From contig NC_134030.1 of the NCBI RefSeq assembly GCF_964204645.1, positions 2,398,778 to 2,462,777 on the forward strand: DNA of 64,000 bases. The letters are read 5' to 3'. The translations under genes were made by a program, and so were the position numbers. The notes under the pieces are model-generated. The model did not search any database and was not told where the DNA came from. It saw only the letters and a program-made list of their open reading frames with translations. The stretch comes from Tubulanus polymorphus. Lineage: Eukaryota; Animalia; Nemertea. Shown one piece after another: positions 25,933 to 64,000 of the stretch. Position 1 is the first letter of the stretch. The number at the start of each line of letters is the position of its first letter.

Positions 25933-26245
<313 letters not shown>

Positions 26246-38789: not shown

Positions 38790-39165
38790 GACTGGTCTAA
38801 AGTTGTTCAATTGGTTATAGAACCTAAATGAGCTCAGACTGGTCTTAAGTTATAAGATTAGCTATAAAACCAAAATGAGCTTAGACTGATCTCAAGTTGT
38901 TAGATTAGCTATAGTACCAAAATCAGCTAAGACTGGTCTCAGATTGTTCAATTGGTTATAGAATGAGCTGAAACTGATCTTAAGCTGTTAGATTGGCTAT
39001 AGAACCAAGATGAGCTGACTGATCTCAAGTTGTTAGATTGATTATAGAACCAAAATCAGCTAAGACTGGTCTCAGATTGTTCAATTGGTTATAGAACCAA
39101 GATGAGCTGACTGATCTCAAGTTGTTAGATTGATTATAGAATCAAAATAGCTTTTAGACTGGTCC
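38790..39165 (+). repeat. Degenerate ~45-48-bp satellite (AGACTGGTCTTAAGTTGTTAGATTGGCTATAGAACCAAAATGAGCT-like), ~8 copies
   Basis: Recurring GACTG(G/A)TCT and TATAGAACC motifs. Confidence 0.85.
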
Positions 39166-40579: not shown

Positions 40580-41293
40580 ATGCGGGGATACGTGATTGCC
40601 GGTGCTGTATGTTTCGTCGCAGCTCCTTTTGTTCTACCAGCGATTGGTTTTACAGCTGCTGGAATCACTGCTGGATCCATTGCGTCGTCGATGATGTCAA
40701 CAGCTGCAGTGGCTAACGGTGGTGCAGTAGCTGCGGGAAGTACGGTAGCCGTTCTTCAGTCGGCTGGTGCAGCAGGTACGTGATGCGCTTAATCAAGACT
40801 GTACCTAGCATTTGAATTTTGTGGAGGGGGCAGTGAATGGGGCAGTCTATTGGATATATGTAGCAATAATATTTGCAAAAATGGCACCTAACCAGAATTT
40901 CTGGGGGCAATTCCTCCCCACGTCCCCCACTATGTACGGCCCTGTTAATGATAATATAATCTTCAAAAGATATCATATAAAGTATATCCCATGGAAATCA
41001 TAGCAAGTTATTGGGATTGTGCATCTGCAGTAGTAAAATCTATTGCTGATTTGAGTCATGACTTAAGATCTCGATCGCAGAAACAATTCTAAACAATTAC
41101 GTTGTCATAGGATATGAGAATATTTCTAAATGTTGAACCTTCTATTGCAATTTAGTCATCGATCTCTTATGTTGCTTATAATGTTTTTCGTTTGTTTTCA
41201 GGTCTTGGTTTAGGGACTAAATTGACGGCTGGTGCTGTCGGCGTAGGTGCTGTTAAAGCTGTTAAGGTTGCACGGAAGGCACTGAGACGATAG
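40580..41293 (+). CDS. IFI27: ISG12/IFI27-like (IFI6/IFI27 family) protein, divergent paralogue A; exons 40580-40775 + 41202-41293; 95 aa ending [30 protein letters not shown]
   Basis: Exon 1 has the ISG12 signature [48 protein letters not shown]. Donor GCAG|GTACGT is at 40776, acceptor TTTTCAG ends at 41201, the phase-1 splice keeps the frame, and TAG is at 41291-41293. Family recognised from the motif; orthology to a specific vertebrate gene is not implied. Confidence 0.9.
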
Positions 41294-42313
41294 TGTTTGA
41301 CACTCGTGAATTCATTGACGACGAACTTCTGATAACAAATCGTTTCTGCAATGTATTTCTTTCCATAAACATGTACACATATTCTGCGTATATTGTAACC
41401 TAATTGGCCTCTACCAAATTGGATTAAAAATGTGATTTAAATATCATCATAGAGTTGTTATAAACGTTTCGAGTTAAACCTCTCTAAAGAACTGTCTGGA
41501 ATTAGCACAGACACCAAGTTCTTAATGAATTTATATACTTTTAAATCTTGGTCGGTTGGATGAGGGTCGTAGAACCGGGCATAGGAAACAACTACTCCCA
41601 GGACTGAGTGACCGCTAAACCCGTTCAAATGCACACAATTTGGGCTGCAGTATACATTTCAAAAACTCGTCGGAGAGTAGGCCGAGATCTGAATTCTTCT
41701 ATTCGATCAAAGTTTTCTGTTAATAGATATATGAGATTGCCGATTTTCACCCTTCCCTCCCTTCCCTCTCTCCCCTCCCTTACCCTCCCTTCCCCCTCCT
41801 CTCTCTCCCTCCCCTATGTACGCTTTTAGTACATGTCTAAGGACATGTCCCACGAGTACGTACTTAACGTGACAACCCCCGCCCCCCCCCCCCATCCCGA
41901 ATACAATGAAGGATATCATTAGGGTTCGATTAAAACAATGAGACAATGTTATTGAGCTATAAAAGTCATCAGCTAAAGGTTCCAATCCTTGACCTTGTCC
42001 AAATTTGGATAAAAAGAAGGCATTAATATTAAACGAATTATTTGCTCGCGGATAACGCACGTTACGCACACAAACTACGGCAGACAGAAATATTTGTTTA
42101 AATAACATTGCGCTCCCTTAGTAAAAGTACGCTTTAAGTTTATCCCTCCCCTCGTCTGCATTCTTCCTTTTTGTACGGATTCTGAAACCTCATCCCTTCC
42201 TAGAGGCGAACGTGTGGCTTCCTAGACGCCAAATGCCTAGTTACAGCGCAGTACGGTGACAGTACTACGTATGCCTACTGCGCAGCAGTATCAACATGCT
42301 TCAGTTGGATCGC

Positions 42314-42323
42314 GGGATTTCCC
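42314..42323 (+). promoter_or_regulatory. Consensus NF-kB site GGGATTTCCC upstream of B1 (distal module copy)
   Basis: Exact match to GGGRNWYYCC; the proximal module has the variant GAGATTTCCC near 42645. Confidence 0.5.
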
Positions 42324-42649
42324 CAATTCCTCGTATTGAAACTTTCCACACTACCCCATATCATTAAATCCACTGCTTCTTCCCGAGAACTACAGCAGAC
42401 AGAAATATTTGTTAAAATCACATTGTGCCCTCTTTGTAAAGTATGTACGCTTTAAGTTTACCCCTCCCCTCCCCTGCACCCTTTTGCACAGAAACCTCCT
42501 CCCTTCTTAGATGCGAACGTATTTCCTAGAGCCTTGTGACGCTGGCGTATTTATGGCACAGTACTGCATTGAGCGTGACAGTACTGTGTACCTACGCGTG
42601 TATTGTGCAGCAGTATGTTACATATTAGCATCTACTACGATCGCGAGAT

Positions 42650-42765
42650 TTCCCCAATTCTTCGTATCGAAACCTCGCCTTTCCCGATTCCTCGTATCGA
42701 AACCTCGCCTTTCCCGATTACTCGTATCGAAACCTCGCCTTTCCCGATTACTCGTATCGAAACTT
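42650..42765 (+). repeat. 30-bp VNTR (CCCGATTCCTCGTATCGAAACCTCGCCTTT) directly after the kB site; 2-4 copies per module
   Basis: Also at ~46229-46323, 46630-46713, 49861-49941, 53484-53564, 56954-57034, 60421-60501 and 63835-63989. Confidence 0.9.
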
Positions 42766-42819
42766 GCCACGTACCCCATATGATTAAATCAACGGCTTCT
42801 TCCCGAGACGCAATACGTT

Positions 42820-42865
42820 TTAAGACTCATTTCTGTGATTAAACAGCACGAAGTTTAAAATTAAG
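42820..42865 (+). other. Candidate non-coding first exon of B1 (donor AAG|GTAAGA at 42866). Equivalent donors at 46816, 50044, 53667, 57137, 60604
   Basis: Strong donor 555 bp upstream (423 bp in B2) of the TTTCAG acceptor that sits 1 nt before the ATG. An in-frame TAA with no ATG makes it non-coding. Inr-like TCATTT nearby. The 5' boundary is a guess. Confidence 0.55.
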
Positions 42866-43421
42866 GTAAGATAAAAGTTCGGACATTTTCGAAATATACA
42901 CATTGGACAACGGCTCAATCTGTTTGATATTTAAGCGGAGAGCTTTTTAGCCACTTCTTGTCCGTTCACTCAGTTTGACTGTCAGTACCGGTTCGGTGTG
43001 GTCAGACGGTATTAGTTTTAAACACACTATGGACTGTTTTTATATTTGGTTTAGTGTTCATGTTGTAATTTATAACATATTCTATGATTGTGGTGAATTT
43101 CACTGCTAAAATAATAATTCTCTGAATTTGTTTACCATCGTTGAATATGGAAATATGGGTTGGACTGTCAAGCAATTCACATAAGCATCAATGGCTTATG
43201 TGAACCCCTACTGATTGTTACCTGAGATGTCTCGAGGTGTTACTATAACTACATGGTCTCCCGTGCAACGTTTTGATGCCCAATTTTGTTAATAATCAAT
43301 TGTGCTAACTTCGTATATCGTTGATAATGAAAAGAAAAACAAGTTTTTCTGAACAATTTGATAAACGCAGGTCAACTGAACGAAATAACTGATCAAAAAA
43401 TCGCATTCAATTAATTTCAGA

Positions 43422-44127
43422 ATGGAATATATCCTTGGCGGTGTCGTAGCTGTGGTCGCAGCTCCTTTTGTTCTACCAGCGATTGGTTTTACAGCTGCTG
43501 GAATCACTGCTGGGTCCGCCGCTGCATCGATGATGTCAGCAGCTGCAGTGGCTAACGGTGGTGCAGTAGCTGCGGGAAGTACGGTAGCCGTTCTTCAGTC
43601 GGCTGGTGCAGCAGGTACGTATGATTCTAAAAATAATGCATATTAACCGTTACAATACCATTTCAGACTGATTTAATGCTGTTTTAGAAAATCGCGGAAA
43701 TAAAAACTAGTCTGAAACGGTTTCTTATAGTTTCAACTTTTCGATTACTGTTTATAGTCAATCTTAGATATATTCCTGAAGATGACCTTAATAAGCAGGG
43801 TCCGATCTAAGGAATGAAATCCACTTGCCCGGGTGGCAAGCATATCTGAAATTTCGCTTGTTCACAGACAGTCCGATTGGTGGCACTAGGATATAGTCAA
43901 AACTTTGAAAAACGTATACAAAACATTACCTCAGCAATAAAACCTCCGAAGTTCGAAATCGTCGTTTCTTTTGAGTGTGGAATTTATTACGTGAAGACAT
44001 TTTGATTTTAATTTGATATGCATGTTTTTCAGGTCTTGGTTTAGCGGCTAATGCGGTGGCTGGTGTTACCGGTGCATCGGCTGTTAAAGCTGCAGAGCTT
44101 GCTCTGGATATCGTGAATGGTGATTAG
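43422..44127 (+). CDS. IFI27: ISG12/IFI27-like protein copy B1; exons 43422-43614 + 44033-44127; 95 aa ending [31 protein letters not shown]
   Basis: ISG12 motif; GT at 43615, AG at 44031-44032, TAG at 44125-44127; ATG preceded by acceptor-like TTTCAG|A. Confidence 0.9.
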
Positions 44128-44171
44128 TTTAAATGTCTAACACCTGTTATCTTTAACTAGTTTCCTTGTCG

Positions 44172-44440
44172 CAGGGGCGGATTTGATGGTGCTCTCGGGG
44201 ATCCAGACCTCTTTCTTCCCGTTGAGGTTGTTCTTTGTGTCAAGACAAAAAATCTTTCTGCAAATTTGACACTCATTCTCTCAAAAAACTACAATCTTTC
44301 GGACGTATTTCTTCACAAATAAAACCAAGGGCGGAACCACGTGGAACCCCAGTAGAGGCTTTTAACTTCACTGCTTTAAACCAGAAATATGAATTTTCAT
44401 CCGACCCTGTCTTCAAATTATTTTTTAAGATCCGCCCCTG
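44172..44440. mobile_element. 269-bp MITE-like element with CAGGGGCGGAT terminal inverted repeats, 45 bp after the B1 stop. Copies at 47941-48209, 51349-51617, 54973-55241, 58444-58712, 61911-62179
   Basis: GCAGGGGCGGAT...ATCCGCCCCTGC is a perfect 12-bp inverted repeat. CAGGG-type ends resemble hAT non-autonomous elements. No clear 8-bp target site duplication (TSD). Confidence 0.65.
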
Positions 44441-45718
44441 CGTCCATTGAATCATCGGATTAAATCAGCGATGATGAAATAAAATGTAATTAAAAAATCA
44501 CTTTGTACAAATTTAAACTCTAAAAAAATCGAATTCTATTAAATCAAAAGATCATTAAATCGAAAAAAAACACGATTATTAATCCGACCCTCACTATTTA
44601 AAGATCCTTGTCCGTGTATTTCTTATTCATTATAACGTGTAATTTAATTCAATAAATTGAAGCGAACAAAGTGAAATAAAGGTTTTCGATTTAGTTGTAT
44701 CTCAAACCTGTATTCTAAAAACACATCACGTAATTTCTACGAAATATGTCTTAAAGACGTGTCCTGGCCGTGTATCGGCGATCCCCCTTTGAACATACCC
44801 CATATCTGTTCACATCAAACACGACTAAACGAGGAAGTCAATTATGTTTCTCATTTACTGAATGTAATTATAACTACGTATGAAGGATCACGTGATGGAG
44901 AACGGCGAACGCTTGAAACTCGTTTTGTCTTAGTTTACTGAACGGAAAGTCGTCATCATCATCAAATTCACGGACGGAAGGAGGCCTGGTGGTGGCCTAT
45001 TGGTGTCCGGCTCGTTTGTTGATTAGTATTGGTTTAGGTGACAGGGTTTCCATAAAAAGCTCTCTCACTTAATGATATTTCATTACAAATAATTGGTATA
45101 TTTATTCATTACTAAAACAATAAATTGTTTATAGAGTTGATTAGTTGAATTTTATAAAAGTCTGATCAGTCATAATTAACAGTTTTGGCGTAGTTAATTT
45201 GATAAGTCATACACGCTTGATTTCTAGCCATTTTGTAGATTATCTACCAGGAGAAGGTTTTATTCGGTCCATAAATACGAGTGTTATTCGTGTTGTTCGT
45301 GTTGTTCTGAAATGGTAAAGGAAGTGCTTGTGGCCCAAGGTGAACGTATCGGCAACCTCTATGGAGGTACCAGGATGAATCCCGCCGACATTGTACCACG
45401 TTGTATTAAGTCGAATTGAAAATCGCCTGCGGAGTATGCGGGAGTACTTGGCGTTAACGTCCGGCTTTTAGGGGTAACTTGCGTAGGAAATTGTTTGATA
45501 AAAAGTATCCGTAACTTATAGAAGTTTAAAAGTTGCGCTATTGCTATCGCTGTTACTAATAGCCACCGGAATGGTGACGGTTATTTCTTTTTTTTGTCGT
45601 GTAAATCGAATCGTGTACGATGACGGCAAACTGTAAGAAATTCAACACTGACTTTAAAAAATTCAACGCAAACTTTTGAAAAATTCATCTTGGTTATAGA
45701 ATTAAAAACTAACTGTAC

Positions 45719-46070
45719 GATTGTGAGTTGGTTGTAAGATTGTGAGTTGATTGTAAGATTGTGAGTTGGTTGTAAGATTGTGAGTTGGTTGTAAGATTGT
45801 GAGTTGGTTGTAAGATTGCGAGTTGATTGTAAGATTGTGAGTTGGTTGTAAGATTGTGAGTTGGTTGTAAGATTGTGAGTTGATTGTAAGATTGTGAGTT
45901 GGTTGTAAGATTGTGAGTTGGTTGTAAGATTGTGAGTTGGTTGTAAGATTGTGAGTTGGTTGTAAGATTGTGAGTTGATTGTAAGATTGTGAGTTGATTA
46001 TAAGATTGTGAGTTGATTATAAGATTGTGAGTTGGTTGTAAGATTGTGAGTTGGTTGTAAGATTGCGAGT
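45719..46070 (+). repeat. 19-bp minisatellite GATTGTGAGTTGGTTGTAA, 18 units
   Basis: 342 bp from the first unit to the terminal GATTGCGAGT partial unit = 18 x 19. Confidence 0.97.
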
Positions 46071-46220
46071 ACGTTGTTAAAAATGCGATGTAGAGTTTTT
46101 GCTAGGATGGCGTTCCATAAACCCCCTCCCTTCCTAGAGCCTTTAGAACGCCTAGTTATAGCGCAGTACTGTATTGAACGTAATAGTACTATGTGTACTG
46201 TCCAGTTATAGTTCGATCGC

Positions 46221-46230
46221 GGGATTTTCC
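46221..46230 (+). promoter_or_regulatory. Consensus NF-kB site GGGATTTTCC upstream of B2. Identical sites at 49853, 53476, 56946, 60413, 63827
   Basis: Exact match to GGGRNWYYCC in every unit; 191 bp upstream of the candidate exon-1 donor in B3-B6. Confidence 0.55.
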
Positions 46231-47239
46231 CGATTCCTCGTATCGAAACCTCGCCTTTCCCGATTCCTAGTATACATTCCATATTCGGCGCAAAGTTCAA
46301 GTTCAAGTTCCTCCTATCGAAACTTGCCACGTACCCCATATGATTAAATCAACGGCTTCTTCCCGAGAACTACAGCAGACAGAAAAATTTGTTAAAATCA
46401 CATTGTGCCCTCTTTGTAAAGTATGTACGCTTTAAGTTTACCCCTCCCCTCCCCTGCACCCTTTTGCACAGAAACCTCCTCCCTTCTTAGATGCGAACGT
46501 ATTTCCTAGAGCCTTGTGACGCCTGCGTATTTATGGCACAGTACTGCATTGAGCGTGACAGTACTGTGTACCTACGCGTGTATTGTGCAGCAGTATGTTA
46601 CATATTAGCATCTACTACGATCGCGAGATTTCCCCAATTCTTCGTATCGAAACCTCGCCTTTCCCGATTACTCGTATCGAAACCTCGCCTTTCCCGATTC
46701 CTCGTATCGAAACTTGCCACGTACCCCATATGATTAAATCAACGGCTTCTTCCCGAGACGCGATACGTTTTAAGACTCATTTCTGTGATTAAACAGCACG
46801 AAGTTTAAGATTAAGGTAAGATAATAGTTTGGACATTTTCGAAATATACACATTGGACAACGGCTCAATCTGTTTGATATTTAAGCGGAAAGCTTTTTAG
46901 CCACTTCTTGTCCGTTCACTCAGTTTGACTGTCAGTACCGGTTCGGTGTGGTCAGACGGTATTAGTTTTAAACACACTATGGACTGTTTTTATATTTGGT
47001 TTAGTGTTCATGTTGTAATTTATAACTACTGATTGTTACCTGAGATGCCTCGAGGTGTTACTATAACTACATGGTCTCCCGTGCAACGTTTTGATGCCCA
47101 ATTTTGTTAATAATCAATTGTGCTAACTTCGTATATCGTTGATAATGAAAAGAAAAACAAGTTTTTCTGAACAATTTGATAAACGCAGGTCAACTGAACG
47201 AAATAACAGATCAAAAAATCGCATTCAATTAATTTCAGA

Positions 47240-47896
47240 ATGGAATATTTCCTTGGCGGTGTCGTAGCTGTGGTCGCAGCTCCTTTTGTTCTACCAGCGA
47301 TTGGTTTTACAGCTGCTGGAATCACTGCTGGGTCCGCCGCTGCATCGATGATGTCAGCAGCTGCAGTGGCTAACGGTGGTGCAGTAGCTGCGGGAAGTAC
47401 GGTAGCCGTTCTTCAGTCGGCTGGTGCAGCAGGTACGTATGATTCTGAAAATAATGCATATTAACCGTTACAATACCATTTCAGACTGATTTAATGCTGA
47501 TTTAGAAAATCGCGGAAATAAAAACTAGTCTGAAACGGTTTCTTATAGTTTCAACTTTAATAAGCAGGGTCCGATCTAAGGAATGAAATCCACTTGCCCG
47601 GGTGGCAATCATATCTGAAATTTCGCTTGTTCACAGACAGTCCGATTGGTGGCACTAGGATATAGTCAAAACTTTGAAAAACGTATACAAAACATTACCT
47701 CAGCAATAAAACCTCCGAAGTTCGAAATCGTCGTTTCTTTTGAGTGTGGAATTTATTACGTGAAGACATTTTGATTTTAATTTGATATGCATGTTTTTCA
47801 GGTCTTGGTTTAGCGGCTAATGCGGTGGCTGGTGTTACCGGTGCATCGGCTGTTAAAGCTGCAGAGCTTGCTCTGGATATCGTGAATGGTGATTAG
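47240..47896 (+). CDS. IFI27: ISG12/IFI27-like protein copy B2 (Phe at residue 4); exons 47240-47432 + 47802-47896
   Basis: Same exons as B1; coding intron is 49 bp shorter (369 bp) but splice sites are intact. Confidence 0.9.
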
Positions 47897-49483
47897 TTTA
47901 AATGTCTAACACCTGTTATCTTTAACTAGTTTCCTTGTCGCAGGGGCGGATTTGATGGTGCTCTCGGGGATCCAGACCTCTTTCTTCCCGTTGAGGTTGT
48001 TCTTTGTGTCAAGACAAAAAATCTTTCTGCAAATTTGACACTCATTCTCTCAAAAAACTACAATCTTTCGGACGTATTTCTTCACAAATAAAACCAAGGG
48101 CGGAACCACGTGGAACCCCAGTAGAGGCTTTTAACTTCACTGCTTTAAACCAGAAATATGAATTTTCATCCGACCCTGTCTTCAAATTATTTTTTAAGAT
48201 CCGCCCCTGCGTCCATTGAATCATCGGATTAAATCAGCGATGATGAAATAAAATGTAATTAAAAAATCACTTTGTACAAATTTAAACTCTAAAAAAATCG
48301 AATTCTATTAAATCAAAAGATCATTAAATCGAAAAAAAACACGATTATTAATCCGACCCTCACTATTTAAAGATCCTTGTCCGTGTATTTCTTATTCATT
48401 ATAACGTGTAATTTAATTCAATAAATTGAAGCAAACAAAGTGAAATAAAGGTTTTCGATTTAGTTGTATCTCAAACCTGTATTCTAAAAACACATCACGT
48501 AATTTCTACGAAATATGTTTTAAAAACGTGTCCTGGCCGTGTATCAGCGATCCCCCTTTGAACATACCCCATATCTGTTCACATCAAACACGACTAAACG
48601 AGGAAGTCAATTATGTTTCTCATTTACTGAATGTAATTATAACTACGTATGAAGGATCACGTGATGGAGAACGGCGAACGCTTGAAACTCGTTTTGTCTT
48701 AGTTTACTGAACGGAAAGTCGTCATCATCATCAAATTCACGGACGGAAGGAGGCCTGGTGGTGGCCTATTGGTGTCCGGCTCGTTTGTTGATTAGTATTG
48801 GTTTAGGTGACAGGGTTTCCATAAAAAGCTCTCTCACTTTATGATATTTCATTACAAATAATTGGTATATTTATTCATTACTAAAACAATAAATTGTTTA
48901 TAGAGTTGATTAGTTGAATTTTATAAAAGTCTGATCAGTCATAATTAACAGTTTTGGCGTAGTTAATTTGATAAGTCATACACGCTTGATTTCTAGCCAT
49001 TTTGTAGATTATCTACCAGGAGAAGGTTTTATTCGGTCCATAAATACGAGTGTTATTCGTGTTGTTCGTGTTGTTCTGAAAAGGTAAAGGAAGTGCTTGT
49101 GGCCCAAGGTGAACGTATCGGCAACCTCTATGGAGGTACCAGGATGAATCCCGCCGACATTGTACCACGTTGTATTAAGTCGAATTGAAAATCGCCTGCG
49201 GAGTATGCGGGAGTACTTGGCGTTAACGTCCGGCTTTTAGGGGTAACTTGCGTAGGAAATTGTTTGATAAAAAGTATCCGTAACTTATAGAAGTTTAAAA
49301 GTTGCGCTATTGCTATCGCTATTACTAATAGCCACCGGAATGGTGACGGTTATTTCTTTTTTTTGTCGTGTAAATCGAATCGTGTACGATGACGGCAAAC
49401 TGTAAGAAATTCAACACTGACTTCAATTCAACGCAAACTTTTGAAAAATTCATCTTGGTTATAGAATTAAAAACTAACTGTAC

Positions 49484-49702
49484 GATTGTGAGTTGGTTGT
49501 AAGATTGTGAGTTGATTGTAAGATTGTGAGTTGGTTGTAAGATTGTGAGTTGATTGTAAGATTGTGAGTTGGTTGTAAGATTGTGAGTTGGTTGTAAGAT
49601 TGTGAGTTGGTTGTAAGATAGCGAGTTGGTTGTAAGATTGTGAGTTGGTTGTAAGATTGTGAGTTGGTTGTAAGATTGTGAGTTGGTTGTAAGATTGCGA
49701 GT
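49484..49702 (+). repeat. 19-bp minisatellite, 11 units
   Basis: 209 bp = 11 x 19. Confidence 0.97.
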
Positions 49703-50599
49703 ACGTTGTTAAAAATGCGATGTAGAGTTTTTGCTAGGATGGCGTTCCATAAACCCCCTCCCTTCCTAGAGCCTTTAGAACGCCTAGTTATAGCGCAGTA
49801 CTGTATTGAACGTAATAGTACTATGTGTACTGTCCAGTTATAGTTCGATCGCGGGATTTTCCCGATTCCTCGTATCGAAACCTCGCCTTTCCCGATTCCT
49901 CGTATCGAAACCTCGCCTTTCCCGATTCCTCGTATCGAAACTTGCCACGTACCCCATATGATTAAATCAACGGCTTCTTCCCGATACGCAATACGTTTTA
50001 AGACTCATTTCTGTGATTAAACAGCACGAAGTTTAAGATTAAGGTAAGATAAAAGTTTGGACATTTTCGAAATATACACATTGGACAACGGCTCAATCTG
50101 TTTGATATTTAAGCGGAGAGCTTTTTAGCCACTTCTTGTCCGTTCACTCAGTTTGACTGTCAGTACCGGTTCGGTGTGGTCAGACGGTATTAGTTTTAAA
50201 CACACTATGGACTGTTTTTATATTTGGTTTAGTGTTCATGTTGTAATTTATAACATATTCTATGATTGTGGTGAATTTCACTGCTAAAATAATAATTCTC
50301 TGAATTTGTTTACCATCGTTGAATATGGAAATATGGACTGGACTGTCAAGCAATTCACATAAGCATCAATGGTTTCCCTGAACCCCTACTGATTGTTACC
50401 TGAGATGTCTCGAGGTGTTACTATAACTACATGGTCTCCCGTGCAACGTTTTGATGCCCAATTTTGTTAATAATCAATTGTGCTAACTTCGTATATCGTT
50501 GATAATGAAAAGAAAAACAAGTTTTTCTGAACAATTTGATAAACGCAGGTCAACTGAACGAAATAACTGATCAAAAAATCGCATTCAATTAATTTCAGA

Positions 50600-51304
50600 A
50601 TGGAATATTTCCTTGGCGGTGTCGTAGCTGTGGTCGCAGCTCCTTTTGTTCTACCAGCGATTGGTTTTACAGCTGCTGGAATCACTGCTGGGTCCGCCGC
50701 TGCATCGATGATGTCAGCAGCTGCAGTGGCTAACGGTGGTGCAGTAGCTGCGGGAAGTACGGTAGCCGTTCTTCAGTCGGCTGGTGCAGCAGGTACGTAT
50801 GATTCTGAAAATAATGCATATTAACCGTTACAATACCATTTCAGACTGATTTAATGCTGTTTTAGAAAATCGCGGAAATAAAAACTAGTCTGAAACGGTT
50901 TCTTATAGTTTCAACTTTTCGATTACTGTTTATAGTCAATTTTAGAATATTCCTGAAGATGACCTTAATAAGCAGGGTCCGATCTAAGGAATGAAATCCA
51001 CTTGCCCGGGTGGCAAGCATATCTGAAATTTCGCTTGTTCACAGACAGTCCGATTGGTGGCACTAGGATATAGTCAAAACTTTGAAAAACGTATACAAAA
51101 CATTACCTCAGCAATAAAACCTCCGAAGTTCGAAATCGTCGTTTCTTTTGAGTGTGGAATTTATTACGTGAAGACATTTTGATTTTAATTTGATATGCAT
51201 GTTTTTCAGGTCTTGGTTTAGCGGCTAATGCGGTGGCTGGTGTTACCGGTGCATCGGCTGTTAAAGCTGCAGAGCTTGCTCTGGATATCGTGAATGGTGA
51301 TTAG
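50600..51304 (+). CDS. IFI27: ISG12/IFI27-like protein copy B3 (Phe at residue 4); exons 50600-50792 + 51210-51304
   Basis: Near-identical to B1; intact splice sites and stop codon. Confidence 0.9.
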
Positions 51305-52897
51305 TTTAAATGTCTAACACCTGTTATCTTTAACTAGTTTCCTTGTCGCAGGGGCGGATTTGATGGTGCTCTCGGGGATCCAGACCTCTTTCTTCCCGTT
51401 GAGGTTGTTCTTTGTGTCAAGACAAAAAATCTTTCTGCAAATTTGACACTCATTCTCTCAAAAAACTACAATCTTTCGGACGTATTTCTTCACAAATAAA
51501 ACCAAGGGCGGAACCACGTGGAACCCCAGTAGAGGCTTTTAACTTCACTGCTTTAAACCAGAAATATGAATTTTCATCCGACCCTGTCTTCAAATTATTT
51601 TTTAAGATCCGCCCCTGCGTCCATTGAATCATCGGATTAAATCAGCGATGATGAAATAAAATGTAATTAAAAAATCACTTTGTACAAATTTAAACTCTAA
51701 AAAAATCGAATTCTATTAAATCAAAAGATCATTAAATCGAAAAAAAACACGATTATTAATCCGACCCTCACTATTTAAAGATCCTTGTCCGTGTATTTCT
51801 TATTCATTATAACGTGTAATTTAATTCAATAAATTGAAGCGAACAAAGTGAAATAAAGGTTTTCGATTTAGTTGTATCTCAAACCTGTATTCTAAAAACA
51901 CATCACGTAATTTCTACGAAATATGTTTTAAAAACGTGTCCTGGCCGTGTATCAGCGATCCCCCTTTGAACATACCCCATATCTGTTCACATCAAACACG
52001 ACTAAACGAGGAAGTCAATTATGTTTCTCATTTACTGAATGTAATTATAACTACGTATGAAGGATCACGTGATGGAGAACGGCGAACGCTTGAAACTCGT
52101 TTTGTCTTAGTTTACTGAACGGAAAGTCGTCATCATCATCAAATTCACGGACGGAAGGAGGCCTGGTGGTGGCCTATTGGTGTCCGGCTCGTTTGTTGAT
52201 TAGTATTGGTTTAGGTGACAGGGTTTCCATAAAAAGCTCTCTCACTTAATGATATTTCATTACAAATAATTGGTATATTTATTCATTACTAAAACAATAA
52301 ATTGTTTATAGAGTTGATTAGTTGAATTTTATAAAAGTCTGATCAGTCATAATTAACAGTTTTGGCGTAGTTAATTTGATAAGTCATACACGCTTGATTT
52401 CTAGCCATTTTGTAGATTATCTACCAGGAGAAGGTTTTATTCGGTCCATAAATACGAGTGTTATTCGTGTTGTTCGTGTTGTTCTGAAAAGGTAAAGGAA
52501 GTGCTTGTGGCCCAAGGTGAACGTATCGGCAACCTCTATGGAGGTACCAGGATGAATCCCGCCGACATTGTACCACGTTGTATTAAGTCGAATTGAAAAT
52601 CGCCTGCGGAGTATGCGGGAGTACTTGGCGTTTACGTCCGGCTTTTAGGGGTAACTTGCGTAGGAAATTGTTTGATAAAAAGTATCCGTAACTTATAGAA
52701 GTTTAAAAGTTGCGCTATTGCTATCGCTATTACTAATAGCCACCGGAATGGTGACGGTTATTTCTTTTTTTTTTGTCGTGTAAATCGAATCGTGTACGAT
52801 GACGGCAAACTGTAAGAAATTCAACACTGACTTTAAAAAATTCAACGCAAACTTTTGAAAAATTCATCTTGGTTATAGAATTAAAAACTAACTGTAC

Positions 52898-53325
52898 GAT
52901 TGTGAGTTGGTTGTAAGATTGTGAGTTGGTTGTAAGATTGTGAGTTGGTTGTAAGATTGTGAGTTGGTTGTAAGATTGCGAGTTGGTTGTAAGATTGTGA
53001 GTTGGTTGTAAGATAGCGAGTTGGTTGTAAGATTGCGAGTTGGTTGTAAGATTGTGAGTTGGTTGTAAGATTGTGAGTTGATTGTAAGATTGTGAGTTGG
53101 TTGTAAGATTGTGAGTTGGTTGTAAGATTGTGAGTTGATTATAAGATTGTGAGTTGATTATAAGATTGTGAGTTGATTATAAGATTGTGAGTTGGTTGTA
53201 AGATTGTGAGTTGGTTGTAAGATTGTGAGTTGGTTGTAAGATTGTGAGTTGGTTGTAAGATTGTGAGTTGGTTGTAAGATTGTGAGTTGGTTGTAAGATT
53301 GTGAGTTGGTTGTAAGATTGCGAGT
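52898..53325 (+). repeat. 19-bp minisatellite, 22 units
   Basis: 418 bp = 22 x 19. Confidence 0.97.
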
Positions 53326-54222
53326 ACGTTGTTAAAAATGCGATGTAGAGTTTTTGCTAGGATGGCGTTCCATAAACCCCCTCCCTTCCTAGAGCCTTTA
53401 GAACGCCTAGTTATAGCGCAGTACTGTATTGAACGTAATAGTACTATGTGTACTGTCCAGTTATAGTTCGATCGCGGGATTTTCCCGATTCCTCGTATCG
53501 AAACCTCGCCTTTCCCGATTCCTCGTATCGAAACCTCGCCTTTCCCGATTCCTCGTATCGAAACTTGCCACGTACCCCATATGATTAAATCAACGGCTTC
53601 TTCCCGATACGCAATACGTTTTAAGACTCATTTCTGTGATTAAACAGCACGAAGTTTAAGATTAAGGTAAGATAAAAGTTTGGACATTTTCGAAATATAC
53701 ACATTGGACAACGGCTCAATCTGTTTGATATTTAAGCGGAGAGCTTTTTAGCCACTTCTTGTCCGTTCACTCAGTTTGACTGTCAGTACCGGTTCGGTGT
53801 GGTCAGACGGTATTAGTTTTAAACACACTATGGACTGTTTTTATATTTGGTTTAGTGTTCATGTTGTAATTTATAACATATTCTATGATTGTGGTGAATT
53901 TCACTGCTAAAATAATAATTCTCTGAATTTGTTTACCATCGTTGAATATGGAAATATGGGCTGGACTGTCAAGCAATTCACATAAGCATCAATGGTTTCC
54001 CTGAACCCCTACTGATTGTTACCTGAGATGCCTCGAGGTGTTACTATAACTACATGGTCTCCCGTGCAACGTTTTGATGCCCAATTTTGTTAATAATCAA
54101 TTGTGCTAACTTCGTATATCGTTGATAATGAAAAGAAAAACAAGTTTTTCTGAACAATTTGATAAACGCAGGTCAACTGAACGAAATAACTGATCAAAAA
54201 ATCGCATTCAATTAATTTCAGA

Positions 54223-54928
54223 ATGGAATATATCCTTGGCGGTGTCGTAGCTGTGGTCGCAGCTCCTTTTGTTCTACCAGCGATTGGTTTTACAGCTGCT
54301 GGAATCACTGCTGGGTCCGCCGCTGCATCGATGATGTCAGCAGCTGCAGTGGCTAACGGTGGTGCAGTAGCTGCGGGAAGTACGGTAGCCGTTCTTCAGT
54401 CGGCTGGTGCAGCAGGTACGTATGATTCTGAAAATAATGCATATTAACCGTTACAATACCATTTCAGACTGATTTAATGCTGTTTTAGAAAATCGCGGAA
54501 ATAAAAACTAGTCTGAAACGGTTTCTTATAGTTTCAACTTTTCGATTACTCTTTATAGTCAATCTTAGATATATTCCTGAAGATGACCTTAATAAGCAGG
54601 GTCCGATCTAAGGAATGAAATCCACTTGCCCGGGTGGCAATCATATCTGAAATTTCGCTTGTTCACAGACAGTCCGATTGGTGGCACTAGGATATAGTCA
54701 AAACTTTGAAAAACGTATACAAAACATTACCTCAGCAATAAAACCTCCGAAGTTCGAAATCGTCGTTTCTTTTGAGTGTGGAATTTATTACGTGAAGACA
54801 TTTTGATTTTAATTTGATATGCATGTTTTTCAGGTCTTGGTTTAGCGGCTAATGCGGTGGCTGGTGTTACCGGTGCATCGGCTGTTAAAGCTGCAGAGCT
54901 TGCTCTGGATATCGTGAATGGTGATTAG
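54223..54928 (+). CDS. IFI27: ISG12/IFI27-like protein copy B4; exons 54223-54415 + 54834-54928
   Basis: Near-identical to B1; intact splice sites and stop codon. Confidence 0.9.
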
Positions 54929-56519
54929 TTTAAATGTCTAACACCTGTTATCTTTAACTAGTTTCCTTGTCGCAGGGGCGGATTTGATGGTGCTCTCGGG
55001 GATCCAGACCTCTTTCTTCCCGTTGAGGTTGTTCTTTGTGTCAAGACAAAAAATCTTTCTGCAAATTTGACACTCATTCTCTCAAAAAACTACAATCTTT
55101 CGGACGTATTTCTTCACAAATAAAACCAAGGGCGGAACCACGTGGAACCCCAGTAGAGGCTTTTAACTTCACTGCTTTAAACCAGAAATATGAATTCTCA
55201 TCCGACCCTGTCTTCAAATTATTTTTTAAGATCCGCCCCTGCGTCCATTGAATCATCGGATTAAATCAGCGATGATGAAATAAAATGTAATTAAAAAATC
55301 ACTTTGTACAAATTTAAACTCTAAAAAAATCGAATTCTATTAAATCAAAAGATCATTAAATCGAAAAAAAACACGATTATTAATCCGACCCTCACTATTT
55401 AAAGATCCTTGTCCGTGTATTTCTTATTCATTATAACGTGTAATTTAATTCAATAAATTGAAGCAAACAAAGTGAAATAAAGGTTTTCGATTTAGTTGTA
55501 TCTCAAACCTGTATTCTAAAAACACATCACGTAATTTCTACGAAATATGTTTTAAAAACGTGTCCTGGCCGTGTATCAGCGATCTCCCTTTGAACATACC
55601 CCATATCTGTTCACATCAAACACGACTAAACGAGGAAGTCAATTATGTTTCTCATTTACTGAATGTAATTATAACTACGTATGAAGGATCACGTGATGGA
55701 GAACGGCGAACGCTTGAAACTCGTTTTGTCTTAGTTTACTGAACGGAAAGTCGTCATCATCATCAAATTCACGGACGGAAGGAGGCCTGGTGGTGGCCTA
55801 TTGGTGTCCGGCTCGTTTGTTGATTAGTATTGGTTTAGGTGACAGGGTTTCCATAAAAAGCTCTCTCACTTAATGATATTTCATTACAAATAATTGGTAT
55901 ATTTATTCATTACTAAAACAATAAATTGTTTATAGAGTTGATTAGTTGAATTTTATAAAAGTCTGATCAGTCATAATTAACAGTTTTGGCGTAGTTAATT
56001 TGATAAGTCATACACGCTTGATTTCTAGCCATTTTGTAGATTATCTACCAGGAGAAGGTTTTATTCGGTCCATAAATACGAGTGTTATTCGTGTTGTTCG
56101 TGTTGTTCTGAAAAGGTAAAGGAAGTGCTTGTGGCCCAAGGTGAACGTATCGGCAACCTCTATGGAGGTACCAGGATGAATCCCGCCGACATTGTACCAC
56201 GTTGTATTAAGTCGAATTGAAAATCGCCTGCGGAGTATGCGGGAGTACTTGGCGTTAACGTCCGGCTTTTAGGGGTAACTTGCGTAGGAAATTGTTTGAT
56301 AAAAAGTATCCGTAACTTATAGAAGTTTAAAAGTTGCGCTATTGCTATCGCTATTACTAATAGCCACCGGAATGGTGACGGTTATTTCTTTTTTTTGTCG
56401 TGTAAATCGAATCGTGTACGATGACGGCAAACTGTAAGAAATTCAACACTGACTTTAAAAAATTCAACGCAAACTTTTGAAAAATTCATCTTGGTTATAG
56501 AATTAAAAACTAACTGTAC

Positions 56520-56795
56520 GATTGTGAGTTGGTTGTAAGATTGTGAGTTGATTGTAAGATTGTGAGTTGGTTGTAAGATTGTGAGTTGATTGTAAGATTG
56601 TGAGTTGGTTGTAAGATTGTGAGTTGGTTGTAAGATTGTGAGTTGATTGTAAGATTGTGAGTTGATTGTAAGATTGTGAGTTGGTTGTAAGATTGTGAGT
56701 TGGTTGTAAGATAGCGAGTTGGTTGTAAGATTGTGAGTTGGTTGTAAGATTGTGAGTTGGTTGTAAGATTGTGAGTTGGTTGTAAGATTGCGAGT
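56520..56795 (+). repeat. 19-bp minisatellite, 14 units
   Basis: 266 bp = 14 x 19. Confidence 0.97.
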
Positions 56796-57692
56796 ACGTT
56801 GTTAAAAATGCGATGTAGAGTTTTTGCTAGGATGGCGTTCCATAAACCCCCTCCCTTCCTAGAGCCTTTAGAACGCCTAGTTATAGCGCAGTACTGTATT
56901 GAACGTAATAGTACTATGTGTACTGTCCAGTTATAGTTCGATCGCGGGATTTTCCCGATTCCTCGTATCGAAACCTCGCCTTTCCCGATTCCTCGTATCG
57001 AAACCTCGCCTTTCCCGATTCCTCGTATCGAAACTTGCCACGTACCCCATATGATTAAATCAACGGCTTCTTCCCGAGACGCAATACGTTTTAAGACTCA
57101 TTTCTGTGATTAAACAGCACGAAGTTTAAGATTAAGGTAAGATAAAAGTTTGGACATTTTCGAAATATACACATTGGACAACGGCTCAATCTGTTTGATA
57201 TTTAAGCGGAGAGCTTTTTAGCCACTTCTTGTCCGTTCACTCAGTTTGACTGTCAGTACCGGTTCGGTGTGGTCAGACGGTATTAGTTTTAAACACACTA
57301 TGGACTGTTTTTATATTTGGTTTAGTGTTCATGTTGTAATTTATAACATATTCTATGATTGTGGTGAATTTCACTGCTAAAATAATAATTCTCTGAATTT
57401 GTTTACCATCGTTGAATATGGAAATATGGACTGGACTGTCAAGCAATTCACATAAGCATCAATGGTTTCCCTGAACCCCTACTGATTGTTACCTGAGATG
57501 TCTCGAGGTGTTACTATAACTACATGGTCTCCCGTGCAACGTTTTGATGCCCAATTTTGTTAATAATCAATTGTGCTAACTTCGTATATCGTTGATAATG
57601 AAAAGAAAAACAAGTTTTTCTGAACAATTTGATAAACGCAGGTCAACTGAACGAAATAACAGATCAAAAAATCGCATTCAATTAATTTCAGA

Positions 57693-58399
57693 ATGGAATA
57701 TATCCTTGGCGGTGTCGTAGCTGTGGTCGCAGCTCCTTTTGTTCTACCAGCGATTGGTTTTACAGCTGCTGGAATCACTGCTGGGTCCGCCGCTGCATCG
57801 ATGATGTCAGCAGCTGCAGTGGCTAACGGTGGTGCTGTAGCTGCAGGAAGTACGGTAGCCGTTCTTCAGTCGGCTGGTGCAGCAGGTACGTATGATTCTG
57901 AAAATAATGCATATTAACCGTTACAATACCATTTCAGACTGATTTAATGCTGATTTAGAAAATCGCGGAAATAAAAACTAGTCTGAAACGGTTTCTTATA
58001 GTTTCAACTTTTCGATTCGATTTATTATAGTCAATCTTAGAATATTCCTGAAGATGACCTTAATAAGCAGGGTCCGATCTAAGGAATGAAATCCACTTGC
58101 CCGGGTGGCAAGCATATCTGAAATTTCGCTTGTTCACAGACAGTCCGATTGGTGGCACTAGGATATAGTCAAAACTTTGAAAAACGTATACAAAACATTA
58201 CCTCAGCAATAAAACCTCCGAAGTTCGAAATCGTCGTTTCTTTTGAGTGTGGAATTTATTACGTGAAGACATTTTGATTTTAATTTGATATGCATGTTTT
58301 TCAGGTCTTGGTTTAGCGGCTAATGCGGTGGCTGGTGTTACCGGTGCATCGGCTGTTAAAGCTGCAGAGCTTGCTCTGGATATCGTGAATGGTGATTAG
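57693..58399 (+). CDS. IFI27: ISG12/IFI27-like protein copy B5; exons 57693-57885 + 58305-58399
   Basis: Near-identical to B1 with two synonymous Ala changes; intact splice sites and stop codon. Confidence 0.9.
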
Positions 58400-59988
58400 T
58401 TTAAATGTCTAACACCTGTTATCTTTAACTAGTTTCCTTGTCGCAGGGGCGGATTTGATGGTGCTCTCGGGGATCCAGACCTCTTTCTTCCCGTTGAGGT
58501 TGTTCTTTGTGTCAAGACAAAAAATCTTTCTGCAAATTTGACACTCATTCTCTCAAAAAACTACAATCTTTCGGACGTATTTCTTCACAAATAAAACCAA
58601 GGGCGGAACCACGTGGAACCCCAGTAGAGGCTTTTAGCTTCACTGCTTTAAACCAGAAATATGAATTTTCATCCGACCCTGTCTTCAAATTATTTTTTAA
58701 GATCCGCCCCTGCGTCCATTGAATCATCGGATTAAATCAGCGATGATGAAATAAAATGTAATTAAAAAATCACTTTGTACAAATTTAAACTCTAAAAAAA
58801 TCGAATTCTATTAAATCAAAAGATCATTAAATCGAAAAAAAACACGATTATTAATCCGACCCTCACTATTTAAAGATCCTTGTCCGTGTATTTCTTATTC
58901 ATTATAACGTGTAATTTAATTCAATAAATTGAAGCAAACAAAGTGAAATAAAGGTTTTCGATTTAGTTGTATCTCAAACCTGTATTCTAAAAACACATCA
59001 CGTAATTTCTACGAAATATGTTTTAAAAACGTGTCCTGGCCGTGTATCAGCGATCCCCCTTTGAACATACCCCATATCTGTTCACATCAAACACGACTAA
59101 ACGAGGAAGTCAATTATGTTTCTCATTTACTGAATGTAATTATAACTACGTATGAAGGATCACGTGATGGAGAACGGCGAACGCTTGAAACTCGTTTTGT
59201 CTTAGTTTACTGAACGGAAAGTCGTCATCATCATCAAATTCACGGACGGAAGGAGGCCTGGTGGTGGCCTATTGGTGTCCGGCTCGTTTGTTGATTAGTA
59301 TTGGTTTAGGTGACAGGGTTTCCATAAAAAGCTCTCTCACTTAATGATATTTCATTACAAATAATTGGTATATTTATTCATTACTAAAACAATAAATTGT
59401 TTATAGAGTTGATTAGTTGAATTTTATAAAAGTCTGATCAGTCATAATTAACAGTTTTGGCGTAGTTAATTTGATAAGTCATACACGCTTGATTTCTAGC
59501 CATTTTGTAGATTATCTACCAGGAGAAGGTTTTATTCGGTCCATAAATACGAGTGTTATTCGTGTTGTTCGTGTTGTTCTGAAAAGGTAAAGGAAGTGCT
59601 TGTGGCCCAAGGTGAACGTATCGGCAACCTCTATGGAGGTACCAGGATGAATCCCGCCGACATTGTACCACGTTGTATTAAGTCGAATTGAAAATCGCCT
59701 GCGGAGTATGCGGGAGTACTTGGCGTTAACGTCCGGCTTTTAGGGGTAACTTGCGTAGGAAATTGTTTGATAAAAAGTATCCGTAACTTATAGAAGTTTA
59801 AAAGTTGCGCTATTGCTATCGCTATTACTAATAGCCACCGGAATGGTGACGGTTATTTCTTTTTTTTGTCGTGTAAATCGAATCGTGTACGATGACGGCA
59901 AACTGTAAGAAATTCAACACTGACTTTAAAAAATTCAACGCACTTTTGAAAAATTCATCTTGGTTATAGAATTAAAAACTAACTGTAC

Positions 59989-60264
59989 GATTGTGAGTTG
60001 GTTGTAAGATTGTGAGTTGATTGTAAGATTGTGAGTTGGTTGTAAGATTGTGAGTTGGTTGTAAGATTGTGAGTTGGTTATAAGATTGCGAGTTGATTGT
60101 AAGATTGTGAGTTGGTTGTAAGATTGTGAGTTGGTTGTAAGATTGTGAGTTGGTTGTAAGATTGTGAGTTGATTGTAAGATTGTGAGTTGATTATAAGAT
60201 TGTGAGTTGATTATAAGATTGTGAGTTGGTTGTAAGATTGTGAGTTGGTTGTAAGATTGCGAGT
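59989..60264 (+). repeat. 19-bp minisatellite, 14 units
   Basis: 266 bp = 14 x 19. Confidence 0.97.
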
Positions 60265-61159
60265 ACGTTGTTAAAAATGCGATGTAGAGTTTTTGCTAGG
60301 ATGGCGTTCCATAAACCCTCCCTTCCTAGAGCCTTTAGAACGCCTAGTTATAGCGCAGTACTGTATTGAACGTAATAGTACTATGTGTACTGTCCAGTTA
60401 TAGTTCGATCGCGGGATTTTCCCGATTCCTCGTATCGAAACCTCGCCTTTCCCGATTCCTCGTATCGAAACCTCGCCTTTCCCGATTCCTCGTATCGAAA
60501 CTTGCCACGTACCCCATATGATTAAATCAACGGCTTCTTCCCGAGACGCAATACCTTTTAAGACTCATTTCTGTGATTAAACAGCACGAAGTTTAAGATT
60601 AAGGTAAGATAAAAGTTTGGACATTTTCGAAATATACACATTGGACAACGGCTCAATCTGTTTGATATTTAAGCGGAGAGCTTTTTAGCCACTTCTTGTC
60701 CGTTCACTCAGTTTGACTGTCAGTACCGGTTCGGTGTGGTCAGACGGTATTAGTTTTAAACACACTATGGACTGTTTTTATATTTGGTTTAGTGTTCATG
60801 TTGTAATTTATAACATATTCTATGATTGTGGTGAATTTCACTGCTAAAATAATAATTCTCTGAATTTGTTCACCATCGTTGAATATGGAAATATGGGCTG
60901 GACTGTCAAGCAATTCACATAAGCATCAATGGCTTATGTGAACCCCTACTGATTGTTACCTGAGATGTCTCGAGGTGTTACTATAACTACATGGTCTCCC
61001 GTGCAACGTTTTGATGCCCAATTTTGTTAATAATCAATTGTGCTAACTTCGTATATCGTTGATAATGAAAAGAAAAACAAGTTTTTCTGAACAATTTGAT
61101 AAACGCAGGTCAACTGAACGAAATAACTGATCAAAAAATCGCATTCAATTAATTTCAGA

Positions 61160-61866
61160 ATGGAATATATCCTTGGCGGTGTCGTAGCTGTGGTCGCAGC
61201 TCCTTTTGTTCTACCAGCGATTGGTTTTACAGCTGCTGGAATCACTGCTGGGTCCGCCGCTGCATCGATGATGTCAGCAGCTGCAGTGGCTAACGGTGGT
61301 GCTGTAGCTGCGGGAAGTACGGTAGCCGTTCTTCAGTCGGCTGGTGCAGCAGGTACGTATGATTCTGAAAATAATGCATATTAACCGTTACAATACCATT
61401 TCAGACTGATTTAATGCTGATTTAGAAAATCGCGGAAATAAAAACTAGTCTGAAACGGTTTCTTATAGTTTCAACTTTTCGATTACTCTTTATAGTCAAT
61501 CTTAGATATATTCCTGAAGATGACCTTAATAAGCAGGGTCCGATCTAGGGAATGAAATACCACTTGCCCGGGTGGCAAGCATATCTGAAATTTCGCTTGT
61601 TCACAGACAGTCCGATTGGTGGCACTAGGATATAGTCAAAACTTTGAAAAACGTATACAAAACATTACCTCAGCAATAAAACCTCCGAAGTTCGAAATCG
61701 TCGTTTCTTTTGAGTGTGGAATTTATTACGTGAAGACATTTTGATTTTAATTTGATATGCATGTTTTTCAGGTCTTGGTTTAGCGGCTAATGCGGTGGCT
61801 GGTGTTACCGGTGCATCGGCTGTTAAAGCTGCAGAGCTTGCTCTGGATATCGTGAATGGTGATTAG
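61160..61866 (+). CDS. IFI27: ISG12/IFI27-like protein copy B6; exons 61160-61352 + 61772-61866
   Basis: Near-identical to B1 with one synonymous Ala change; intact splice sites and stop codon. Confidence 0.9.
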
Positions 61867-63457
61867 TTTAAATGTCTAACACCTGTTATCTTTAACTAGT
61901 TTCCTTGTCGCAGGGGCGGATTTGATGGTGCTCTCGGGGATCCAGACCTCTTTCTTCCCGTTGAGGTTGTTCTTTGTGTCAAGACAAAAAATCTTTCTGC
62001 AAATTTGACACTCATTCTCTCAAAAAACTACAATCTTTCGGACGTATTTCTTCACAAATAAAACCAAGGGCGGAACCACGTGGAACCCCAGTAGAGGCTT
62101 TTAACTTCACTGCTTTAAACCAGAAATATGAATTTTCATCCGACCCTGTCTTCAAATTATTTTTTAAGATCCGCCCCTGCGTCCATTGAATCATCGGATT
62201 AAATCAGCGATGATGAAATAAAATGTAATTAAAAAATCACTTTGTACAAATTTAAACTCTAAAAAAATCGAATTCTATTAAATCAAAAGATCATTAAATC
62301 GAAAAAAAACACGATTATTAATCCGACCCTCACTATTTAAAGATCCTTGTCCGTGTATTTCTTATTCATTATAACGTGTAATTTAATTCAATAAATTGAA
62401 GCAAACAAAGTGAAATAAAGGTTTTCGATTTAGTTGTATCTCAAACCTGTATTCTAAAAACACATCACGTAATTTCTACGAAATATGTTTTAAAAACGTG
62501 TCCTGGCCGTGTATCAGCGATCCCCCTTTGAACATACCCCATATCTGTTCACATCAAACACGACTAAACGAGGAAGTCAATTATGTTTCTAATTTACTGA
62601 ATGTAATTATAACTACGTATGAAGGATCACGTGATGGAGAACGGCGAACGCTTGAAACTCGTTTTGTCTTAGTTTACTGAACGGAAAGTCGTCATCATCA
62701 TCAAATTCACGGACGGAAGGAGGCCTGGTGGTGGCCTATTGGTGTCCGGCTCGTTTGTTGATTAGTATTGGTTTAGGTGACAGGGTTTCCATAAAAAGCT
62801 CTCTCACTTAATGATATTTCATTACAAATAATTGGTATATTTATTCATTACTAAAACAATAAATTGTTTATAGAGTTGATTAGTTGAATTTTATAAAAGT
62901 CTGATCAGTCATAATTAACAGTTTTGGCGTAGTTAATTTGATAAGTCATACACGCTTGATTTCTAGCCATTTTGTAGATTATCTACCAGGAGAAGGTTTT
63001 ATTCGGTCCATAAATACGAGTGTTATTCGTGTTGCTCGTGTTGTTCTGAAAAGGTAAAGGAAGTGCTTGTGGCCCAAGGTGAACGTATCGGCAACCTCTA
63101 TGGAGGTACCAGGATGAATCCCGCCGACATTGTACCACGTTGTATTAAGTCGAATTGAAAATCGCCTGCGGAGTATGCGGGAGTACTTGGCGTTAACGTC
63201 CGGCTTTTAGGGGTAACTTGCGTAGGAAATTGTTTGATAAAAAGTATCCGTAACTTATAGAAGTTTAAAAGTTGCGCTATTGCTATCGCTATTACTAATA
63301 GCCACCGGAATGGTGACGGTTATTTCTTTTTTTTGTTGTGTAAATCGAATCGTGTACGATGACGGCAAACTGTAAGAAATTCAACACTGACTTTAAAAAA
63401 TTCAACGCAAACTTTTGAAAAATTCATCTTGGTTATAGAATTAAAAACTAACTGTAC

Positions 63458-63676
63458 GATTGTGAGTTGGTTGTAAGATTGTGAGTTGATTGTAAGATTG
63501 TGAGTTGGTTGTAAGATTGTGAGTTGGTTGTAAGATTGTGAGTTGGTTGTAAGATAGCGAGTTGGTTGTAAGATTGTGAGTTGGTTGTAAGAGTGTGAGT
63601 TGGTTGTAAGATTGTGAGTTGGTTGTAAGATTGTGAGTTGGTTGTAAGATTGTGAGTTGGTTGTAAGATTGCGAGT
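63458..63676 (+). repeat. 19-bp minisatellite, 11 units
   Basis: 209 bp = 11 x 19. Confidence 0.97.
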
Positions 63677-64000
63677 ACGTTGTTAAAAATGCGATGTAGA
63701 GTTTTTGCTAGGATGGCGTTCCATAAACCCCCTCCCTTCCTAGAGCCTTTAGAACGCCTAGTTATAGCGCAGTACTGTATTGAACGTAATAGTACTATGT
63801 GTACTGTCCAGTTATAGTTCGATCGCGGGATTTTCCCGATTCCTCGTATCGAAACCTCGCCTTTCCCGATTCCTCGTATCGAAACCTCGCCTTTCCCGAT
63901 TCCTCGTATCGAAACCTCGCCTTTCCCGATTCCTAGTATACATTCCATATTCGGCGCAAAGTTCAAGTTCAAGTTCCTCCTATCGAAACTTGCCACGTAC

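Follow-up and report, generated by a model that had tools for sequence, protein, structure and literature searches.

The question raised by this locus is how several near-identical genes of an ISG12/IFI27-like family came to lie side by side in the genome of the ribbon worm Tubulanus polymorphus, and what such copies may do in a host without known interferon. The window analysed is a stretch of 64,000 nucleotides (nt) of contig NC_134030.1, a 23-Mb contig in an assembly of 267.8 Mb in 77 contigs; all coordinates are given in window numbering, and those past 64000 refer to the following 10 kb of the same contig. In keeping with a palaeonemertean host, and with the invertebrate origin supposed in the initial annotation, an intronless HSP70 gene of this genome shares 94 % identity with a T. 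polymorphus protein and no more than 81 % with any other protein listed; mitochondrial COX1 (PF00115) has no match in the assembly. The locus is a lineage-specific tandem cluster of Ifi-6-16 (ISG12/IFI27/IFI6) genes, made up of one older paralogue (gene A) and seven B genes, each carried by one of seven repeated units (U1 to U7). It is probable, in our judgement, that the seven B genes and gene A were shaped by unequal crossing-over and concerted evolution and that, by homology within the family, they specify a likely pathogen-responsive, hydrophobic membrane effector.

The assignment to the family was made with the Pfam profile PF06140 (Ifi-6-16; cut-off 29.1 bits). Exon 1 and exon 2 were scanned separately, and the exons were joined solely to translate them and to count codons. 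Exon 1 scored 85.3 bits in B and 81.3 bits in A, covering positions 3–63 of the 84 in the profile, while the 30 residues of exon 2 alone gave no Pfam match; the ISG12/IFI27-like identity proposed in the initial annotation thus stands. A word search with exon 1 matched 88 proteins, every one of which carries PF06140 and many of which are named IFI27-like. The relatives with names are IFI27-like proteins from fishes and reptiles, from a prawn and from a coral, and over the core they are 63–92 % identical; one metagenome contig bears two genes of the family. Among the matches listed there was no 100 % match to the window proteins and none from this species. Searching the complete genome in six frames with PF06140 revealed nine loci (A, the seven B genes and a further gene, C) scoring 84–92 bits. 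Eight of the nine sit in this cluster, the ninth, gene C, being alone on contig C9.

Tandem Repeats Finder revealed short repeats of 19, 21 and 30 bp that return every 3.2–3.9 kb from 42.6 kb to the end of the window. When U4 was used as a BLAST query against the window, full-length copies were found at the six unit starts listed in Table 1 (99.0–99.1 % identity, gaps counted). The array consists of seven head-to-tail units of 3.2–3.9 kb, with six genes in the window and one past its end, and spans approximately 24.6 kb, from about 42.1–42.3 kb to about 66.9 kb, i.e. 2.9 kb past the window end. Homology of the seventh unit stops at about 66909, after a 273-bp insertion at 66595–66867; there are therefore seven units, and the array goes no further. 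The initial annotation had counted at least seven genes and expected the array to run on beyond the window, which it does, by only one more gene. The six B copies and one divergent gene that it placed in the window were all confirmed, but the units are not uniform, since their blocks, indels and minisatellite lengths differ. A long 5' block precedes U1, U2 and U7 and is missing ahead of U3–U6, and an older copy of it (about 71 % identity) lies at 42073–42342. U2 bears deletions of 131 bp upstream of the gene and of 51 bp in the intron. U7 has a 96-bp deletion and the 273-bp insertion mentioned above, and is without the 461-bp repeat element of the other units. The U7 insertion is CT-rich and resembles the (GA/CT)n-type tracts seen in the window. 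At its 3' end every unit carries a 19-bp minisatellite, in numbers that range between 11.8 and 22.8 copies; sequence related to the region in which this minisatellite lies occurs elsewhere in the genome.

The B gene of U4 starts with an ATG at 54223 and ends with a TAG stop in exon 2; the two exons are separated by an intron of approximately 418 nt with a GTACGT donor and an acceptor ending in ...TTTTTCAG. The gene comprises 95 codons, with a phase-1 intron after codon 64 that splits a Gly codon. All seven B copies possess an open frame and both splice sites intact, and the predicted proteins vary at residue 4 only, which is F in U2 and U3 and I in the other five; both points had been made in the initial annotation for the copies in the window, and extend to the seventh. 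Two further sites vary synonymously among the B genes; in U4 coordinates the residue-4 difference lies at 54232 and the synonymous ones at 54366 and 54375. Gene A, a diverged paralogue just upstream of the array, also has 95 codons and its intron at the position found in B, as does gene C, which lies on the minus strand of its contig. Immediately before the coding exon there is an acceptor-like sequence which ends one base before the ATG (TCTAG in A, TTTCAG in B and TTTTCAG in C). Because this pyrimidine tract with its AG sits so close to the start codon, an untranslated upstream exon probably precedes the coding exon in all three genes.

The B protein is approximately the domain alone, with no N-terminal extension or signal peptide. 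Ala, Gly, Val, Leu and Ile make up 70–73 % of its residues (the overall range being 0.65–0.73), and hydropathy is positive on average, with a maximum of 2.6 in a 15-residue window. Charge separates the paralogues: over the whole models gene A has eight Lys and Arg residues and no Asp or Glu (strongly basic), B has one and four, respectively (acidic), and gene C is weakly basic (+4). In both A and B the charge is confined to the first residues and the exon 2 tail, the membrane core in exon 1 being homogenised between the two. Few relatives share the acidic C-terminal end of B, a net tail charge of -2 or lower occurring in 6 of 62, but the trait is not unique to B. Other open frames were also considered and set aside. 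Those over the 19-bp minisatellite and a 101-codon frame antisense to exon 1 result from the repeats and from the Gly/Ala codon composition; an 88-codon frame inside the unit and the other long frames in the window contain no Pfam domain.

With the minisatellites left out, the units could be aligned and compared over 2.1–2.9 kb. Substitution between pairs of U1–U6 amounts to 0.35–0.84 % (mean 0.56 %), which bears out the claim of the initial annotation that the copies are near-identical through introns and spacers, while U7 diverges from these six by 1.2–1.8 %. Variable sites are equally frequent in coding (3/285) and non-coding (28/2408) sequence (Fisher p = 1); the copies are too young to show constraint. 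Several patterns speak against a tree-like history, among them the long 5' block, which precedes U1, U2 and U7 only. In the four-gamete test, 33 of the 66 pairs formed by 12 informative sites show all four combinations. The 19 private substitutions of U7 all lie in its flanks, and none falls within the 1.64 kb at 54092–55735 (U4 coordinates) that holds the gene; the counts are 0/654 in the gene body and 19/1475 outside it (p = 0.0017), although some of the last few may be alignment edge effects. U7 is thus a homogenised centre of about 1.6 kb between older flanks. Finally, in the last 52 codons of exon 1, A and B are identical at 148 of 156 nt, including identical runs of 56 and 74 nt, whereas in exon 2 they agree at 57 of 90 nt, their first 12 codons are unrelated and their introns cannot be aligned. 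Gene C differs from both at 12 silent codons within the same 52. This stretch was probably converted, either from B into A or from A into B.

The 461-bp repeat in the spacer provides a relative clock. It is flanked by a 6-bp duplication (AAGTCG), has a (TCA)n run at one end, and many copies with 80–93 % identity are present on other contigs, indicating that it is a dispersed non-autonomous element; it looks like a member of a SINE-like (short interspersed nuclear element) family. It occupies one and the same site in U1–U6, whereas U7 has a clean empty site, and among its six copies only three sites vary over 461 bp, all of them singletons. Insertion thus took place in a single unit, and units of that type later came to occupy six positions.

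The mosaic sites, the pattern in U7 and the shared core of A and B are taken to be marks of gene conversion together with unequal crossing-over. On the evidence of the sequence, the array is still evolving in concert, with exchange among the units and, in exon 1, even with gene A. Since the copies exchange sequence, their low divergence dates the last homogenisation and not necessarily the origin of the array. The initial annotation had spoken of a very recent amplification; the low divergence on which this was based is real, but recency is only one reading of it in the light of the mosaic site pairs, the U7 centre and the A/B tract. The simplest form of that reading, a single very recent duplication burst with no later exchange, in which the differences are mutations accumulated since the burst, would account for the very low divergence of U1–U6 and for an element insertion common to them that has gathered so few differences. 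It is nevertheless unlikely, as all four gametes occur at half of the informative site pairs, long and short 5' blocks are out of step with the order of the units, U7 combines older flanks with a young centre, and A and B have a converted exon 1 core in common; recurrent mutation could cover a few such sites, but not so many among so few. That one or two real copies were falsely expanded to seven during assembly is very improbable. Near-identical 3.5-kb repeats are known to trouble assemblers, which is a general concern with no direct support at this locus, but with such arrays the usual assembler error is collapse and not expansion, the assembly comprises 77 contigs with one of 23 Mb at the locus, and the units are individually marked by private substitutions (7 in U1, 3 in U6 and 19 in U7) as well as by unit-specific indels, minisatellite lengths and long or short 5' blocks.

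In our analysis, the B genes are best read as specifying a membrane effector that would respond to pathogens and whose amount would grow with copy number. The units arose by unequal crossing-over with junctions in the 19-bp and 30-bp minisatellites, the repeat-rich junctions being a plausible substrate for misaligned exchange, and the repeat element entered one unit before being carried into six of the seven. The 95-residue, very hydrophobic, Gly/Ala-rich product is expected, from what is known of the family, to insert into an internal membrane, that of the endoplasmic reticulum (ER) or the mitochondrion; in humans, IFI6 and IFI27 reside in internal membranes and act at the ER or mitochondria (bioRxiv 10.1101/693333). 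The B genes are likely induced by infection through IRF/STAT-type signalling, as in shrimp, in which LvIFI6-16 rises up to 434-fold after infection with white spot syndrome virus (WSSV), depends on IRF and STAT, and when knocked down leads to increased viral load and mortality (PMC9144789). The main effect of having seven identical copies would be that more product can be made in a short time. The initial annotation had pointed out that invertebrates lack canonical interferon. This poses no paradox for the family, given that the shrimp gene is virus-induced via IRF and STAT and that such loci occur here: the ribbon-worm genome carries one STAT locus and at least four loci with an IRF domain, both being parts of the pathway on which LvIFI6-16 depends.

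Several observations weigh against an infection-induced effector. The 1.2 kb in front of A and of B contain no interferon-stimulated response element (ISRE) or IRF-E element (GAAANNGAAA); one GAAANNGAAA is found at -90 of the lone gene C. The region upstream of B has a kappaB-like decamer (-747) and two palindromes resembling the gamma-activated site (GAS; TTCNNNGAA; -304 and -226), and gene A also has two GAS-like sites upstream. Two GAS-like sites, with about 0.35 expected, constitute weak motif support, and both of those in B fall in the stretch deleted from U2. The true promoter may lie further upstream if an untranslated first exon exists. With only three variable coding sites (one replacement and two silent), selection is unmeasurable. 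In clam, one IFI27-like gene falls after challenge (PMC7430831), and membership of the family is therefore no guarantee of induction. It is conceivable, though doubtful, that the array grew neutrally, as a consequence of DNA rich in minisatellites and prone to recombination, the genes being constitutive membrane or mitochondrial genes with no immune role and their copy number non-adaptive. Unit junctions that fall in minisatellites, a repeat-rich surrounding 40 kb with no other recognisable domain, the lack of a detectable difference in constraint between coding and non-coding sequence, and the lack of an ISRE upstream would all be compatible with this. Against it stand the frames and splice sites kept in seven of seven copies, weak evidence in copies so young, and the strong response of shrimp and clam members of the family to pathogens or their molecular patterns (PMC9144789, PMC7430831). 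A more specific proposal appears improbable to us, namely that the B array is polymorphic in copy number and that pathogens have driven it to amplify the dosage of an ISG12 variant with acidic ends in an animal that lacks interferon, while the basic gene A keeps its termini despite repeated conversion of its core. Were it true, selection would maintain two oppositely charged forms that have different membrane targets or act as partners.

Table 1. Coordinates of the genes, repeat units and repeats of the Ifi-6-16 cluster
Feature	Position	Strand	Remarks
Gene A, coding exon 1	40580..40775	+	196 nt; phase-1 donor GTACGT; Pfam Ifi-6-16 81.3 bits
A/B shared tract	40616..40785	+	94.7 % over 170 nt, reaching 10 nt into intron; probable gene-conversion tract
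Gene A, coding exon 2 including TAG stop	41202..41293	+	Basic C-terminal tail
Long 5' block (~400 bp) before unit 1	42327..42679	+	Other copies 46226-46628 (U2), 63892-64294 (U7)
Unit 1 (U1) and long 5' block of unit 2	42680..46628	+	B exons 43422-43614, 44033-44127
Unit 2 (U2)	46629..49857	+	B exons 47240-47432, 47802-47896; residue 4 = F
Unit 3 (U3)	49858..53480	+	B exons 50600-50792, 51210-51304; residue 4 = F
Unit 4 (U4), reference unit	53481..56950	+	B exons 54223-54415, 54834-54928
Unit 5 (U5)	56951..60417	+	B exons 57693-57885, 58305-58399
Unit 6 (U6)	60418..63831	+	B exons 61160-61352, 61772-61866
Unit 7 (U7), start	63832..64000	+	Off-window remainder with exons 64912-65104, 65523-65617
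461-bp dispersed repeat (about 455 bp), U4	55748..56208	.	Unit positions 2271-2720; inside spacer
Same insertion, other units	44947-45407 (U1), 48716-49176 (U2), 52124-52584 (U3), 59219-59679 (U5), 62686-63146 (U6)	.	
19-bp minisatellite, 3' end of each unit (U4)	56515..56795	.	Tandem Repeats Finder
19-bp minisatellite, other units	45714-46070, 49479-49702, 52893-53325, 59984-60264, 63453-63676	.	
30-bp minisatellite at unit junction (U4)	53481..53564	.	2.4 to 3.6 copies; Tandem Repeats Finder
30-bp minisatellite, other junctions	42662-42763, 46642-46713, 49858-49941, 56951-57034, 60418-60501, 63832-63939	.	

The 40 kb upstream and 7 kb downstream of the array are rich in simple repeats and contain no open frame with a recognisable domain; the window itself yielded neither an Rfam family nor a transfer RNA. 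A tandem repeat of 47 bp (also 92 and 133 bp), in about eight copies with 75–89 % identity, lies shortly before gene A, at 38790–39152. A block at 30000–32400 shows extreme GC skew (0.68), its minus strand reading as His/Thr/Pro-rich frames of 200 or more codons, and is probably a minisatellite. Long (GA/CT)n-type and related simple-repeat tracts are present at 25870–26440, 16980–17370 and 7340–7900.

The human ISG12/FAM14 cluster consists of IFI27, IFI27L1, IFI27L2 and IFI6. Zebrafish has eight isg12 genes in tandem, six of which are induced by interferon and chikungunya virus (CHIKV) (bioRxiv 10.1101/693333). The ribbon-worm genes resemble those of vertebrates in the Pfam Ifi-6-16 domain, in a length of about 90–130 residues and in their hydrophobic, Gly/Ala-rich make-up, and the human and zebrafish (isg12.1-8) clusters in lineage-specific tandem duplication. 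They differ in residing in a host without known interferon, in that the copies are far more alike (over 99 %, spacers included) than the vertebrate paralogues named here, and in a protein that is almost domain only, with neither the N-terminal extension nor the signal peptide.

Among invertebrates, LvIFI6-16 of the shrimp Litopenaeus vannamei belongs to the same family and is virus-induced via IRF and JAK/STAT without interferon; it is described as a lone gene whose 136-residue product has a predicted signal peptide (PMC9144789), whereas here there are seven identical 95-residue genes known from sequence. A tandem arrangement like that of the ribbon worm occurs in the octocoral Paramuricea clavata, in which three to four Ifi-6-16 genes lie on the same strand within 10 kb; clusters of this family therefore exist in non-bilaterian invertebrates too. 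The coral protein, like B, is acidic at its C-terminal end. In contrast to the near-identical B genes, the coral copies are 73–88 % identical and are therefore old duplicates. They also have the domain in a single exon, with a separate exon for the signal peptide, whereas in the ribbon worm the phase-1 intron after codon 64 splits the domain. The coral array would thus appear to consist of secreted or signal-anchored members of the family with an intronless domain exon. The tandem series at positions 541–15333 of the Paramuricea clavata contig comprises three to four exons for the Ifi-6-16 domain and at least four for signal peptides.

Concerted evolution of tandem arrays runs by unequal crossing-over and gene conversion. 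The ribbon-worm locus resembles such arrays in its head-to-tail units, non-coding identity, mosaic variants, diverged edge units and repeat-rich junctions, and differs in having seven units only. It documents the ISG12/IFI27 family in Nemertea, a phylum with almost unstudied innate immunity, and offers a compact, well-resolved example of a small immune-type gene that has been amplified and homogenised. With seven identical copies, an oppositely charged paralogue with a converted core and a datable element insertion, it is a convenient place to ask whether, in a marine invertebrate, the copy number of an effector tracks pathogen pressure, and where the protein is free to diverge. Tandem clusters are normal for this family and interferon-independent induction has been described before, so that the general picture of the family is unchanged; what is new is the phylum, the degree of identity among the copies and the clear traces of exchange between them.

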